Shown here: positions 51,173 through 57,100 of the stretch, piece after piece | Layout of the letters: the number at the start of each line of letters is the position of its first letter | Numbering within the stretch: the stretch's first letter is position 1 | Assembly: GCA_002269645.1 (NCBI GenBank) | Contig: NIVC01000778.1 | Coordinates: forward strand, 248,001 to 312,000 | Source of the DNA: Macrostomum lignano | Taxonomy: Eukaryota | Length of the DNA stretch: 64,000 nt | Direction of reading: 5' to 3' | Translations under genes and position numbers: made by a program | The notes under the pieces: model-generated | What the model was told of the DNA's origin: nothing | What the model saw: the letters and a program-made list of their open reading frames with translations, nothing else | Databases searched by the model: none

Positions 51173-54100
51173 TCAAGCGGCCGCTTTACCGGGCTTTTCC
51201 GATTCAATTTCCACCATCATGACGTCATTGGCGGCCTTCGCTGGCGGCGACGAGGTCGACTGTCCGTTGGCGCCGGAGCCGTCGCCGCCCTGCTCGATTT
51301 CCTGCGCCGGCTGGCGTTTGAGATCGTCGGCGCACAAAAAGTGAGTGAAGGCGGCGCAGTACAGGTGCGACAGGCCGATGGAGCCCGATCGCATCCGGTC
51401 GCTGTTGTTGAATTGAGCGCGGGTAATACTAATGAAACACCAAGTTACTTGTGTTCAGGGACCTCGCCATGGATTTTATGGTGGGGGGGGACAAAGCCAA
51501 GAATTCAACATGTACATGACTAAATTCCGGCATTCCCATTATTTTGAGAATCGTGTTGTCAGCGCTCATTTTGGCACCGCAGGCACTCATTTTAGCGCCG
51601 CAGGCACTCATTTTGGCACCGCAGGCACTCATTTTAGCGCCGCAGGCATTCATTTTAGCGCCGCAGGCACTCATTTTAGCGCCGCAGGCATTCATTTTAG
51701 CGCCGCAGGCACTCATTTTAGCGCCGCAGGCATTCATTTTAGCGCCGCAGGCATTCATTTTAGCGCCGCAGACACTCATTTTAGCGCCGCAGGCACTCAT
51801 TTTAGCGCCGCAGGCACTCATTTTAGCGCCGCAGGCACTCATTTTAGCGCCGCAGGCACTCATTTTAGCGCCGCAGGCACTCATTTTAGCGCCGCAGGCA
51901 CTCATTTTAGCGCCGCAGGCACTCATTTTAGCGCCGCAGGCACTCATTTTAGCGCCGCAGGCATTCATTTTGGCACCGCAGGCACTCATTTTAGCGCCGC
52001 AGGCACTCATTTTGGCACCGCAGGCACTCATTTTAGCGCCGCAGGCATTCATTTTAGCGCCGCAGGCACTCATTTTAGCGCCGCAGGCATTCATTTTAGC
52101 GCCGCAGGCACTCATTTTAGCGCCGCAGGCATTCATTTTAGCGCCGCAGGCACTCATTTTAGCGCCACAGGCACTCATTTTAGCGCCGCAGGCATTCATT
52201 TTAGCGCCGCAGGCATTCATTTTGGCACCGCAGGCACTCATTTTAGCGCCGCAGGCATTCATTTTAGCGCCGCAGACACTCATTTTAGCACCGCAGGCAC
52301 TCATTTTGGCACCGCAGGCACTCATTTTAGCGCCGCAGGCATTCATTTTAGCGCCGCAGACACTCATTTTAGCGCCGCAGGCACTCATTTTAGCGCCGCA
52401 GGCACTCATTTTAGCGCCGCAGGCACTCATTTTAGCGCCGCAGGCACTCATTTTAGCGCCGCAGGCACTCATTTTAGCGCCGCAGGCACTCATTTTAGCG
52501 CCGCAGGCATTCATTTTAGCGCCGCAGGCATTCATTTTAGCACCGCAGGCACTTATTTTAGCGCCGCAGGCATTCATTTTAGCGCCGCAGGCATTCATTT
52601 TAGCGCCGCAGGCATTCATTTTAGCGCAGCAGGCACTCATTTTAGCGCCGCAGGCACTCATTTTAGCGCCGCAGGCACTCATTTTAGCGCCGCAGGCACT
52701 CATTTTAGCGCCACAGGCACTCATTTTAGCGCCGCAGGCACTCATTTTAGCGCCGCAGGCACTCATTTTAGCGCCGCAGGCACTCATTTTAGCGCCGCAG
52801 GCATTCATTTTAGCGCCGCAGGCATTCATTTTAGCACCGCAGGCACTTATTTTAGCGCCGCAGGCATTCATTTTAGCGCCGCAGGCATTCATTTTAGCGC
52901 CGCAGGCATTCATTTTAGCGCAGCAGGCACTCATTTTAGCGCCGCAGGCACTCATTTTAGCGCCGCAGGCATTCATTTTAGCGCAGCAGGCACTCATTTT
53001 AGCGCCGCAGGCACTCATTTTAGCGCCGCAGGCATTCATTTTAGCGCCGCAGGCACTCATTTTAGCGCCGCAGGCATTCATTTTAGCGCCGCAGGCACTC
53101 ATTTTAGCGCAGCAGGCACTCATTTTAGCGCCGCAGGCACTCATTTTAGCGCCGCAGGCATTCATTTTAGCGCCGCAGGCACTCATTTTAGCGCCGCAGG
53201 CACTCATTTTAGCGCCGCAGGCACTCATTTTAGCGCCGCAGGCACTCATTTTAGCGCCGCAGGCACTCATTTTTAGCGCCGCAGGCATTCATTTTAGCGC
53301 CGCAGCCACTCATTTTGGCACCGCAGGCACTCATTTTAGCGCCGCAGGCACTCATTTTAGCGCCGCAGCCACTCATTTTAGCGCCACAGGCACTCATTTT
53401 AGCGCCACAGGCACTCATTTTAGCGCCTCAGGCACTCATTTTAGCGCCGAAGGCGCTATATTTTGGCGCCCTGAAGAAAAATTATTGATTTCCACAACAA
53501 GTCACAAGGTGGGGTGGGCATGGGGAGGACAAAGCATTAGAATATCCCCCCATAGCTTTTACTCGGGGGCACATGTCCCCCCTGTCCCCCGGTGGCGATG
53601 CGCCTGCTTGTATTGTTACTCTAAGTAGGCAGTTGCGCAAAGCATTGAAATTCAAATTTATCAACCGGTCAACTCACAGCAGCCAGTCCACAGCGTACAG
53701 CAGGCCAACTTCGGTCTCCGAGATGCCAACGGAAGTCAGGATGGTGACGAGGATAACCAGACTAGCCGATGGGATATTTGGCAGGGCCAGCATGGCGGAG
53801 GACACCAGCAGGATGATGACAACGATGGTGCCAGCCGTGACTGGGAAGCCGGTCAGCTGGGCCAGGAACACCGCGGCAACGGCGATGAAGCAAGCGCTGC
53901 CGTCGCCTTTGATGGCCGCGGCAAACGGGATGACGAAACGAGAGACCTCCTGGCTGAGGCCGTAGCGGTCGCAGCACTCGATCATCTCCGGGATGGCCAC
54001 CACGCTGCGGGGATGGTTCAGGTAGTTACAAACTGCTCCCACATGTGCATTCAGCAGTGCTTGTTTAGTATAGTAGACTATCACCAAGCCCCCTCCGGGG

Positions 54101-57100
54101 GAGAATTCTGCTTTACTAATTAAAAAGGTCAAAAACTGAACAGCCATAAAATCTGATATGGAGTTTTTTAGCATTCCTTTGTAAATTTAGGTGGCGAGCA
54201 AAGTTCACCCTGCTGTGATTGGGCAGCAGCTCTGAGCTCCCAAGTTCACCCTGCTGTGATTGGGCAGCAACTCTAAGCTCCCAAGTTCACCCTGCTGTGA
54301 TTGGGTGGCAGCTCTGAGCTCCCAAGTTCACCCTGCTGTGATTGGGCAGCAGCTCTGAGCTCCCAAGTTCACCCTGCTGTGATTGGGCAGCAGCTCTGAG
54401 CTCCCAAGTTCACCCTGCTGTGATTGGGCAGCAGCTCTGAGCTCCCAAGTTCACCCTGCTGTGATTGGGCAGCAGCTCTGCCTCTGAGCTCCCAAGTTCA
54501 CCCTGCTGTGATTGGGCAGCAGCTCTGAGCTCCCAAGTTCACCCTTTGTTTAGCAATCGTTTTGACACCAAATCGAATTAATTGGCTCATTCCATCGCAC
54601 ACTCACGGAGCTGTGGTAGCGAAGGAGATGAACCAGGAGCGAACTGTGTTGGGCAAAAAGTAGAGCGGATTCTTCCTCGAGACCACGATGAAAACAACCT
54701 GCAGCAGAATGAAGTGCACGGCCAGGCCCACAGTCACGCTCAGGATGAAGAGGCCCAGCTTCATGAAAGTGCCTCGCGGATCGAGCACGGACACCACCGA
54801 GGCGGCGATCATGAAGCAGACGCCGGGCGGGTCAGCCTGCAAAGCAGTGCATTATTTATCGTTCATCATGGGCTAAGAATATTACTGATTAAGTAGAAAC
54901 ATGGGCACATAGCTCTAGTGGGCGATTATTGCATTGCTCACCAGAGAAACCAGCGCATCACTTTGATCACCACGTGAGCCAGAGACTGGAAGAAGGCGAT
55001 GAAAGGCCGCCCCTGCTCGCCTGTGGTGCGCGCGGCCATGCCGAACACGGCAGCACAGAATATCACGCCGATCATGTTCACCGACGACGAGTTCGACGTC
55101 GAACGTTCGTCCTCGACAATGGTGTCGTTGCCCAGCAGGCCCAGGCTGGCCAGCTGGCCCTTCAGCGGCAGCTTGTACACTGTCTGCGTCTTGAATAGCG
55201 CCACGCCAACCAAATTGTCCGGGAAGATGTTGAACAGCAGGTCGGCGAACACGTCCGATGACGTCAGCTTGGCGATCTTGACGGTCTGGGTGGCCGTGCC
55301 ATTGTTGGCTGGGCCTCGGTTAATGCCTGCGGTTAGTGTTAGGCAGGGATGTTCTAGTGTTAGATAGGAGTGTTCTGCTGTTGGATAGGAGTGTTCTAAT
55401 GTTAGATAGGAGTGTTCTACTGTTAGATAGGATAGAAGTGTTCTACTGTTAGATAGGAGTGTTCTACTGTTAGATAGGAGTGTTCTACTGTTAGATAGGA
55501 GTGTTTTACTGTTAGATAGGAGTGTTTTACTGTTAGATAGGATAGAAGTGTTCTACTGTTAGATAGGATAGAAGTGTTCTACTGTTAGATAGGAGTGTTC
55601 TACTGTTAGATAGGAGTGTTCTATTGTTAGATAGGAGCCTTCTTTTGTTAGATAGGAGTGTTCTATTGTTCGATAGGAGTGTTCTACTGTTAAATAAGAG
55701 TGTTTTACTGTTAGATAAGAGTGTTCTACTGTTAGATAGGAGTGTTTTACTGTTAGATAGAATAGAAGTGTTCTACTGTTAGATAGGATAGAAGTGTCCT
55801 ACTGTTAAATAAGAGTGTTTTACTGTTAGATAAGAGTGTTCTACTGTTAGATAGGAGTGTTCTACTGTTAGATAGGAGTGTTCTATTGTTAGATTGGAGT
55901 CTTCTTTTGTTAGATAGGAGTGTTCTATTGTTAGATTGGAGTCTTCTTTTGTTAGATAGAAGTGTTCTACTGTTAGATAGGAGTATTCTACTGTTAGATA
56001 CGAGTGTTCTACTGTAAGACAGGAGTATTCTCAAGTTTTCTAGCTAATTAGACTACTTATCACTGCCGAAGTCAGTAGACAGTATAGAATAAAGTTGGTA
56101 AATTCAAGTTTCCCACAGCCAGACAATGTTATTGGATATGAGGCTCGCAGCGGCAGATCCAAGGGCATAATTATCATTCACGATCGGCCTGCGCATTCGA
56201 AAAAAATGTCTTCAGTTCTTTGAAACTGCAGTCTTGAACCTTAAAAGCCATGCCGGACCGGAAACCAGCTTGATAGCATAACTGGCTTCTCCCTGACCCC
56301 TCGTGACCCCCGCTGTTGCCTGGAAAAAGTCCACGCTACTTAGTTCGCTTGCCATTTGGACATTGAACTGTGTGTAAAAATTGTAAACACACGACCCAGT
56401 GCAGGAGCCCCGCAGTTCTGCTTCTCACGAAAGAAGAGCCGCAGCTTACAGCCACGCAGACTGCATATATATTAATCTGTGCAAATTTTGCTGCAAAATG
56501 CATTAGCGAGATAAGAAGTTTTCAGTTTTTCAGAACTAAATTCCCCATTTCAGAACTAAATTCCCCATTTCAGAACTAAATTCCCCATTTCAGAACTAAA
56601 TTCCCCATTTCAGAACTAAATTCCCCATTTCAGAACTAAATTCCCCATTTCAGAACTAAATTCCCCATTTCAGAACTAAATTCCCCATTTCAGAACTAAA
56701 TTCCCCATTTCAGAACTAAATTCCCCATTTCAGAACTAAATTCCCCATTTCAGAACTAAATTCCCCATTTCAGAACTAAATTCCCCATTTCAGAACTAAA
56801 TTCCCCATTTCAGAACTAAATTCCCCATTTCAGAACTAAATTCCCCATTTCAGAACTAAATTCCCCATTTCAGAACTAAATTCCCCATTTCAGAACTAAA
56901 TTCCCCATTTCAGAACTAAATTCCCCATTTCAGAACTAAATTCCCCATTTCAGAACTAAATTCCCCATTTCAGAACTAAATTCCCCATTTCAGAACTAAA
57001 TTCCACATTTCAGAACTAGACCGAAATTTCACAACGTCAAAAACTTTCAATGGCAATGGTATTTTGCAGCGAAAACCGGTGACATTCGCATGTTGAAGCT

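Follow-up and report, generated by a model that had tools for sequence, protein, structure and literature searches.

A frameshifted SLC1 gene copy of Macrostomum lignano belongs to a flatworm transporter clade with a lysine at the hub of the sodium sites

Introduction

Transporters of the SLC1 family are the textbook case of tight coupling between ions and substrate, with three Na+ per substrate molecule, and all of them have an uncoupled anion pathway as well. Asn310 of their NMDG motif (GltPh numbering, used below unless EAAT3 is named) is the hub linking the Na1, Na3 and substrate sites. Here, we describe a gene of this family that lies in a 64,000-nucleotide stretch of the genome of the flatworm Macrostomum lignano (hereafter the window), an exact base-for-base match to contig NIVC01000778.1 of the Mlig_3_7 assembly. 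The gene occupies positions 51173-59923 of the window on the minus strand, has seven exons, belongs to the SLC1 or sodium:dicarboxylate-symporter (SDF) family and is copy g9 of Mlig028619 (BOX15_Mlig028619g9). The explanation that we favor, and hold to be reasonably probable on the sequence comparisons reported here, is that g9 is a frameshifted copy of a gene whose intact proteins carry a lysine, Lys310, that would take the place of the Na3/Na1 ions and leave little or no need for Na+.

The ligands of the three Na+ ions have been described for GltTk: Na3 is held by the hydroxyls of T92 and S93, the carboxamide of N310, the carboxylate of D312 and the carbonyl of Y89; Na1 by the carboxylate of D405 and the carbonyls of G306, N310 and N401; and Na2 by backbone carbonyls and the sulfur of M311 (PMC5110648). 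Na+ at N310 repositions the NMDGT loop (PMC5110648), and binding at Na1 and Na3 flips the NMD loop to give the high-affinity state (PMC12668577). Accordingly, the signature of the Na+ sites comprises [S/T]92-93, N310, [M/S]311, [D/E]312 and [D/E]405 (PMC12668577; for the definition of the Na3 site, see also PMC5110648).

Several described systems depart from this scheme. The obligatory neutral amino-acid exchangers ASCT1/2 (SLC1A4/5) retain the three Na+ sites in full, NMDG and D405 included; they have Cys/Thr instead of R447 (EAAT3 numbering), Gln instead of Glu at EAAT3 position 374 and no K+ counter-transport. The prokaryotic proton-coupled transporters of the GltP/GltT type keep N310 and are marked by a hydrophobic residue, [A/L/I/V/M/F], at position 92 together with L311 and N405 (PMC12668577). 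The reconstructed ancestral SLC1 protein AncInt, in which T92 is likewise hydrophobic and D405 non-acidic, reaches the high-affinity state and binds aspartate without Na+, with the NMD loop flipped in (PMC12668577); its binding-site residues are kept, and it is uncoupled allosterically, with no tethered charge. Basic side chains in former Na+ sites are known from unrelated folds and families: LaINDY, of the DASS family, is a Na+-independent exchanger of the elevator type, like SLC1, in which the pair R159 and H392 occupies Na1 and Na2, and K158 of ApcT and R262 of CaiT play similar Na+-substituting roles (PMC11782487).

Results

When its frame is restored, the g9 gene gives a conceptual protein that matches the SDF/SLC1 profile of Pfam (PF00375) over residues 46-465 with E=5e-71 and 240 bits (cutoff 27.9); protein P0001, which differs from it by four residues, has the same precomputed Pfam domain. 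The conceptual protein aligns over its whole core to human EAAT2, EAAT1, EAAT3 and ASCT1/2 (E=2e-68 to 1e-55), the best matches among solved structures being EAAT2, EAAT1 and EAAT3 (SLC1A2/3/1), with E=2e-68 to 1e-61 and about 30% identity. An AlphaFold2 monomer model of g1, an intact copy of the gene, was built from a 40-sequence alignment and has a mean predicted local distance difference test (pLDDT) score of 81.8, a predicted template modeling (pTM) score of 0.80 and a core pLDDT of about 90. In this model, the break of transmembrane helix (TM) 7 falls exactly at K383-G384, and the two re-entrant hairpins, HP1 and HP2, are there as well, as in the EAATs; Foldseek places it on inward-facing EAAT3, ASCT2 and EAAT2 with target-normalized TM-scores of up to 0.93 and root-mean-square deviations of 2.3-2.8 Å. 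The predicted fold thus has the scaffold and the transport domain, with HP1, an unwound TM7, HP2 and TM8, that define SLC1, and the gene is a member of the family by profile and predicted fold.

The segments that bear the coupling and substrate residues are as follows.

53857-53922, minus strand: TM7, AAAIKGDGSACFIAVAAVFLAQ
53694..51365 across intron 6, minus strand: TM8, AVDWLLDRMRSGSIGLSH
54623..53989 across intron 5, minus strand: HP1, FATTAPVVAIP
53761-53781, minus strand: HP2, PNIPSAS (human EAAT2 counterpart, AASIPSAG)

Residue equivalences were taken from a gapless HMMER alignment to human EAAT2 and EAAT1. The NMDG motif is replaced by KGDG (K383, G384, D385 and G386), so that of the four side chains at the Na3 site, which here are A128, N129, K383 and D385 (T/T to A/N in TM3), only the Asp is kept. 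The Na1 carboxylate (D405, EAAT3 D455) is replaced by H472, and position 311, which contacts both Na2 and the substrate, is G384. The EAAT subfamily Glu at EAAT3 position 374, responsible for K+ counter-transport and H+ co-transport, is I391. On the substrate side, the clamp formed by D394 and R397 (EAAT3 D444/R447) is present as D461 and R464, within a D-R-x-R motif like that of the EAATs; N401 (EAAT3 N451), which binds the α-carboxylate, is I468, and the Ser-rich motif of HP1 has changed from SSS to TAP (TTAPVVAIP). An earlier, sequence-only reading of the window had seen in this gene an SLC1 member that keeps the substrate Asp/Arg pair without most of the cation-coupling residues. Our profile match and alignment agree with it: the peptides that it quoted (KGDG, the TM8 end IGLSH, TTAPVVAIP and the HP2 segment) are all encoded on the minus strand, and the alignment reproduces N to K, M to G, E374 to I, N451 to I and D455 to H, as well as the retention of the motif Asp, D444 and R447. 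The same reading regarded HP2 as aberrant; PNIPSAS is indeed what the DNA encodes, but the departure is smaller than claimed, the IPSA core being common to this protein and human EAAT2.

This set of residues fits neither of the variant types described within the family. The proton-coupled prokaryotic signature is matched by the Ala at position 92, whereas position 310 is Lys, 311 is Gly and 405, although non-acidic, is His. Compared to ASCT1/2, the protein has KGDG and His405 instead of NMDG and D405, and Ile rather than Gln at EAAT3 position 374; it keeps the substrate Arg and loses Na+ ligands, which is the converse of the ASCT situation.

Relatives were collected by a word-indexed database search and by an exhaustive search of representatives, which gave 5875 matches at E<=1e-3, 307 of them at E<=1e-30; taxon names are known for part of these representatives. 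The closest relatives are the M. lignano paralogue Mlig022109 (64% identity), many tapeworm proteins (41-48% identity) and one monogenean protein, followed by bivalve, gastropod, nemertean, hemichordate and Seison proteins (33-41% identity). In a neighbor-joining tree, the only kind built, of 144 full-length sequences (464 columns, 200 bootstraps), a flatworm clade of 28 members with representatives in Macrostomum, many tapeworm genera and one monogenean is recovered with a bootstrap value of 97. All 28 sequences have Lys310 and all 28 have Asp312, hence the name K-clade used below. The K-clade is nested in a 55-member bilaterian superclade (bootstrap 96) that also contains molluscs, a nemertean, hemichordates and Seison; this superclade holds all the Lys310 and all the His405 sequences of the tree and no NMD sequence. 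The sequence-only reading had surmised that invertebrate databases might already contain a divergent clade to which the gene belongs, and the searches and the tree bear this out.

Residue counts at the coupling and substrate positions, from an alignment of 183 sequences, are given below for the K-clade (n=28) and for canonical SLC1 proteins (n=89).

Position 310: K-clade, K 28; canonical, N 86
Position 311: K-clade, G16/S8/A4; canonical, M 83
Position 312: K-clade, D 28; canonical, D 76
Position 92: K-clade, hydrophobic (20) or Ser (6); canonical, T 82
Position 93: K-clade, N21/D7; canonical, T 79
Position 318 (EAAT3 E374): K-clade, I18/Q7/L2/M1; canonical, E 66
Position 394: K-clade, D 27; canonical, D 80
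Position 395: K-clade, R 28; canonical, R 82
Position 397: K-clade, R 27; canonical, R 74
Position 401: K-clade, I9/S6/L5/N3; canonical, N 86
Position 405: K-clade, H16/T7; canonical, D 83

Overall, D394, R395 and R397, together with G313 and the Ser/Thr at 314, are conserved in the K-clade at canonical levels. Where position 405 is not His (12 of the 28 sequences), it is Thr, Val, Gly, Ile or Ser. The Gln found at EAAT3 position 374 in seven members is the residue that ASCT1/2 have there. The complete Na+-site signature (PMC12668577) is present in none of the 55 superclade members, as against 64 of the 89 canonical proteins, and a basic residue stands at 310 or 311 in 48 of the 55, as against one of the 89.

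In the 27 superclade members outside the K-clade, N401 is mostly kept (24 of 27), 15 have His at position 405, and at position 311 there are 14 with Arg and three with Lys. Lys310 is found outside flatworms in hemichordates and in one metagenome-derived sequence (P0099) only. Among the mollusc, nemertean and hemichordate proteins named 'EAAT-like' or 'glt-6-like', such as Pecten P0026 and Saccoglossus XP_002737559.1, the basic residue, apart from the Lys310 of hemichordates, is at 311 (Arg, NRDG) or there is none (NADG). Features that they share with the M. lignano protein are [TS]N in TM3, TS[TA]AVAIP in HP1, IPS[AS]S in HP2, hydrophobicity at 374 and SH as the end of TM8. Motifs seen among molluscs and others of the non-flatworm members (P0072, P0074, P0075, P0077-P0080, P0085, P0092, etc.) include NRDG, GRAG, SRIG and TNKAG. 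From these sequences, Arg or Lys at 311 looks like a second, apparently independent route by which the unwound TM7 loop receives a fixed positive charge.

If the substitutions were a private decay of this gene, as would be suggested by orthologues with canonical NMDG and D455, the rest of the clade should not share them. Instead, Lys310 and Asp312 are invariant, and the orthologue pair of Taenia solium and T. asiatica gives a nonsynonymous rate (dN) of 0.034 and a synonymous rate (dS) of 0.098, i.e. dN/dS = 0.34 over 333 codons (Fisher p = 6e-4). The same ratio is uninformative for two M. lignano copies, which differ by eight substitutions in all (p = 0.10). The mean pairwise identity of the HP1-TM8 core is 0.49-0.51 in the K-clade and 0.49-0.55 in canonical SLC1, and tapeworms have at least five paralogue groups of K-clade genes. 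A fully canonical EAAT is encoded by M. lignano as well (P0233, with YYTVTT, SSSATLP, NMDG and a TM8 ending in NVLGD), so the K-type genes are an additional family and not degenerate replacements. Judging from the aligned sequences, the substitutions were inherited from an ancestor and conserved, and do not represent private decay.

A profile search aimed at trematode and planarian members returned the same protein set; this search was word-prefiltered, and absence from those groups is not claimed. The planarian genes eaat2-1/2-2 are glial markers (PMC5055395), and we assigned them to neither clade. Proteins of the clade figure in public databases under names given by similarity ('Amino acid transporter', 'EAAT2/3', 'neutral amino acid transporter A', 'glt-6-like'), which, to judge from the residues present, are probably wrong as to ion coupling. 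A description of the clade, of its altered ion sites or of Mlig028619 was sought in the literature, and nothing relevant was found: the genes are already in public databases, and their altered ion sites are without description in the literature found. As to the paralogous locus, Mlig022109g1 (L002 6001-11435, contig NIVC01003072.1) is adjoined by a second SDF gene, Mlig031123g1 (L002 1-242, minus strand; 380 amino acids), which falls in the same cluster at >=90% identity and indicates a tandem duplication there.

The exon model of g9 was established by six-frame translation and inspection of the junctions, every one of which is GT..AG. Its features are listed here in the order of transcription.

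59686..59923, minus strand: exon 1, an open reading frame (ORF) with ATG at 59923 and a GTGAGT donor; N-terminus and TM1; 99.3% identity to g1 exon 1
58219..58293, minus strand: exon 2, TM2, ending in MPGDLFIRLLKLTILPLIAANVVV; canonical AG/GT, phase-consistent, matches the g1 locus (L001)
58008..58130, minus strand: exon 3, TM3; codons 58057-58062 are A128-N129, equivalent to the Na3 ligands T92/S93 of GltPh
54942..55326, minus strand: exon 4, TM3-4 loop and TM4; canonical CAG acceptor, GTGAGC donor (phase 2)
54607..54836, minus strand: exon 5, TM5, TM6 and start of HP1; holds the frameshift
53678..54004, minus strand: exon 6, HP1 tip, TM7 (KGDG), HP2 and start of TM8; out of frame in g9, 100% identity to g1
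53908-53910, minus strand: codon AAA of K383, exon 6
53902-53904, minus strand: codon of D385, exon 6
51173..51401, minus strand: exon 7, remainder of TM8, C-terminus and stop codon; 100% identity to g1
51365-51367, minus strand: codon CAC of H472, exon 7, in place of the Na1 Asp (GltPh D405/EAAT3 D455)
51565..53470, no strand: minisatellite of intron 6, a 21-mer repeated about 91 times (Tandem Repeats Finder, TRF)
58406-59568, 55350-56031, 56528-57018, 57433-57772 and 54201-54545: further minisatellites, in introns 1, 3 and 5 (TRF)

The sequence-only reading had counted seven exons, which is correct, and placed the gene at 51173-54836, which corresponds exactly to exons 5-7, the gene extending further, up to the ATG at 59923. 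It had also argued that the otherwise intact exon structure speaks for a functional protein, and this does not hold for g9. Six to eight nucleotides into exon 5, g9 has CCC (54829-54831, codon 276) where intact g1 has CCCC, the single gap in a BLAST alignment of the window with the g1 locus. With canonical splicing, this 1-nucleotide deletion leads to a premature TGA at 54809-54811 on the minus strand (stop at codon 283), which is the annotated end of the coding sequence (CDS) of BOX15_Mlig028619g9, so that there is no uninterrupted frame through the seven exons. The product as assembled has 282 amino acids, ends in RWFLWLTRPASAS and is identical to the deposited protein PAA76936.1 (P0066); the stop precedes HP1, TM7, HP2 and TM8, i.e. 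all the motifs of interest. Hence, g9 as assembled encodes the first 282 residues only and cannot be a transporter, and a case for function has to be built on the intact paralogous copies and on conservation in the clade.

Two such copies are found on contigs other than that of g9. BOX15_Mlig028619g1 (P0001, PAA72232.1), at locus L001 on contig NIVC01001103.1, whose CDS translates exactly to P0001, has 535 amino acids, shows 99% identity and reads RWFLWLTPPGVCF at the frameshift point; g2 (PAA57382.1), also of 535 amino acids, reads WLTPPGV at the same site. Around the lesion, the DNA of g9 and g1 is otherwise almost identical, including the 105-nucleotide intron 4, and the two CDSs differ by four synonymous and four nonsynonymous substitutions plus the single indel. 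We considered rescue by splicing: 25 GT/GC-AG pairs restore the frame, each of them deleting at least seven residues of the TM4c/TM5 helix, which is gapless across the family. The phase mismatch between exons 4 and 5 might have been due to a non-canonical TG..AG intron or a lost donor G; the intact copy rules this out, the splice site being canonical and a C being missing inside exon 5.

Introns 1, 3, 5 and 6 each contain at least one long minisatellite, with units and copy numbers of 21-mer x91, 41-mer x8, 21-mer x31, 20-mer x24, GATA x85 and 34-mer x33 (TRF). g9 and g1 are unlike in intron lengths, consistent with differing array copy numbers; the intron arrays evolve faster than the exons.

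Elsewhere in the window, an inverted repeat is present at 9999-11387 and 21710-23099, with arms of about 1.4 kb that are 99-100% complementary and are extended inward by Pro-rich repeat ORFs. The interval of about 10 kb between the arms contains a remnant of a piggyBac-type transposase (13645-14220, minus strand; C-terminus of PF13843 and PF13842 zinc finger), and the whole may be a composite or foldback-like mobile element. A tandem macro-satellite whose period is about 1.71 kb extends from about 37000 to 49100; in it, ORFs of 166 and 238 amino acids recur at 39034, 40800, 42511, 44222 and 47627, with a slightly variant copy near 45933; its units contain 15/30-bp microrepeats (TRF array 48111-49102). 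An ORF at 3172-3642 (minus strand) matches the Lamp2-like luminal domain PF01299 weakly (23.5 bits, below the cutoff of 27.2) and may be an exon of a LAMP-family gene. The ORFs at 29800-30985 and 34457-34903, both on the plus strand, have no Pfam match and may be either gene exons or repeats read as protein; the first has an internal peptide repeat of the PPRSTVHAATSQIHSS type.

Discussion

How could the intact K-type proteins work? We propose that the side chain of Lys310 replaces the Asn carboxamide that normally ligates Na3, and that its chain is long enough to bring the ammonium group, a tethered cation, to the Na3 (or Na1) pocket or close to it, where it would form a salt bridge with Asp312 and a hydrogen bond with the Asn/Asp at position 93, while His405 would replace the Na1 carboxylate. 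The conservation pattern is the one expected for such a cation: its only invariant partner is D312, and nothing but Asn or Asp occurs at position 93. With this charge built in, the unwound TM7 loop would be kept flipped in, the high-affinity arrangement normally brought about by Na1 and Na3, and substrate binding and the elevator movement would then be independent of these two ions. As the Na1 carboxylate, E374 and usually N401 are gone, neither a requirement for Na1 and Na3 nor K+ counter-transport is expected, the latter being made unlikely by Ile at 374 in particular. Most likely, the proteins would move an amino acid by facilitated transport or exchange, independently of Na+ or with no more than a modulation through Na2 or pH; ASCT1/2, which work in exchange mode, would be plausible functional analogues. 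The substrate is probably an acidic amino acid, as argued from the retained D394, R395 and R397, but it is uncertain because N401 and the HP1 serines have been lost, and the α-carboxylate would have to be held differently. That Lys or His replaces bound Na+, as the sequence-only reading had suggested, is plausible in view of the recurrent basic residue at 310/311 in the superclade and of the precedents in other families, the replacement being seen in structures there and drawn from sequence alone here.

Several points weigh against this explanation. Some Na+ dependence may remain, since most of the Na2 site consists of backbone carbonyls, about which the sequence says nothing. N401, the α-carboxylate binder in all characterized SLC1 proteins, is lost in most K-clade members, and the substrate could thus differ from Asp/Glu. 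Asp312 is kept in 37 of the 48 superclade members with a basic residue at 310/311 and in four of the seven without, a weak correlation that we do not use as evidence. Finally, the frameshift means no function at all for the g9 copy itself, barring an assembly error.

Two of the rival explanations concern the mechanism. The intact proteins might still be ion-coupled in another way, through one Na+ at Na2 or through H+ by (de)protonation of His405 or Lys310, as proposed for K158 of ApcT. We regard this as unlikely, albeit worth serious attention. The Na2 ligands are main-chain carbonyls (PMC5110648), Ser at 311, found in eight of the 28 K-clade members, is allowed by the Na+ signature, and position 92 is hydrophobic as in the proton-coupled prokaryotic homologues (PMC12668577); His, moreover, has a pKa titratable near physiological pH. 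However, the M311 thioether that contacts Na2 is replaced by Gly or Ala in 20 of the 28, the absence of His405 from 12 of the 28 deprives the clade of a universal coupling site, and the L311 and N405 of the prokaryotic H+ signature are not present. It is still less probable, in our estimation, that the clade has changed its job altogether and consists mainly of anion channels, sensors or carriers of a non-acidic or non-α-amino-acid substrate. Such a change would fit with the loss of N401 and of the Ser-rich HP1 motif, with the replacement of the EAAT TM2 'SS' by 'AN' in the K-type protein and with the anion pathway common to the whole family. The conservation of D394, R395, R397, G313 and S/T314 at canonical levels, on the other hand, argues for an amino-acid pocket with an acidic side-chain clamp.

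The other rivals concern decay, of the family or of g9. It is very improbable that the K-type genes have lost their function and survive as relics of canonical EAATs: g9 is frameshifted, and the canonical EAAT of M. lignano could do the normal job, yet Lys310 and Asp312 are invariant in 28 sequences from flatworm lineages of deep divergence, among them at least five tapeworm paralogue groups, the Taenia pair gives a dN/dS of 0.34, the HP1-TM8 core equals that of canonical SLC1 in its degree of conservation, and the SLC1 fold is confidently predicted. At the family level, this possibility is already effectively refuted. For the g9 copy alone, we see an even chance that the frameshift is real and that g9 is a recently pseudogenized homeologue or allele in the neopolyploid M. 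lignano, redundant with g1 and g2. The deletion is in the deposited assembly, where it is annotated as a truncated protein, no clean alternative splicing restores the frame, and the loss of one copy would be tolerable in a genome that has many gene copies and 180 Mb of duplicated blocks at least 95% identical (PMC5730564). Against this, g9 is otherwise healthy, with exons 99.1-100% identical to those of g1, all splice sites intact, merely as many nonsynonymous as synonymous differences (four each) and at least one private residue, I46, that is the same in paralogue P0002; thus the loss, if real, would be very recent. A homopolymer error left by assembly or polishing, which would make g9 an intact third copy, comes close to the same likelihood because Mlig_3_7 was assembled from PacBio continuous long reads with Canu 1.4 and polished with Pilon, and because short reads map to multiple places in a genome of such high redundancy (PMC5730564). 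The lesion is precisely the loss of one base from a homopolymer run in an otherwise intact gene; Pilon polishing, however, used both DNA and RNA reads, and the other two copies are correctly assembled at the same site. Either way, the g9 locus is by itself ordinary, probably defective or mis-assembled, and its annotation should be flagged as that of a frameshifted copy or possible assembly error.

The family, in contrast to this locus, is of real mechanistic interest. Tentatively, and with less confidence than for the flatworm proteins, we suggest from the residue patterns that a whole bilaterian subfamily of uncharacterized SLC1 proteins has swapped bound Na+ for basic side chains: flatworms and hemichordates would use Lys310, many molluscs Arg311, and His405 would serve widely. 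If true, these proteins would provide the first natural examples, among animals, of glutamate/aspartate carriers that have the EAAT fold and work independently of Na+. For parasitology, the tapeworm proteins are candidate nutrient carriers whose ion sites are unlike those of the host EAATs and ASCTs. They could, on the same condition, be carriers behind Na+-independent amino-acid uptake, such as that reported for Hymenolepis in the classical literature, which we take as a lead and not as evidence. A large, selectively maintained animal clade with Lys at the hub of the Na+ sites, or Arg beside it, and His in place of the Na1 Asp would amount to a natural experiment on ion coupling replaced by a tethered charge, of a kind that has been informative in the LeuT-fold and DASS families.

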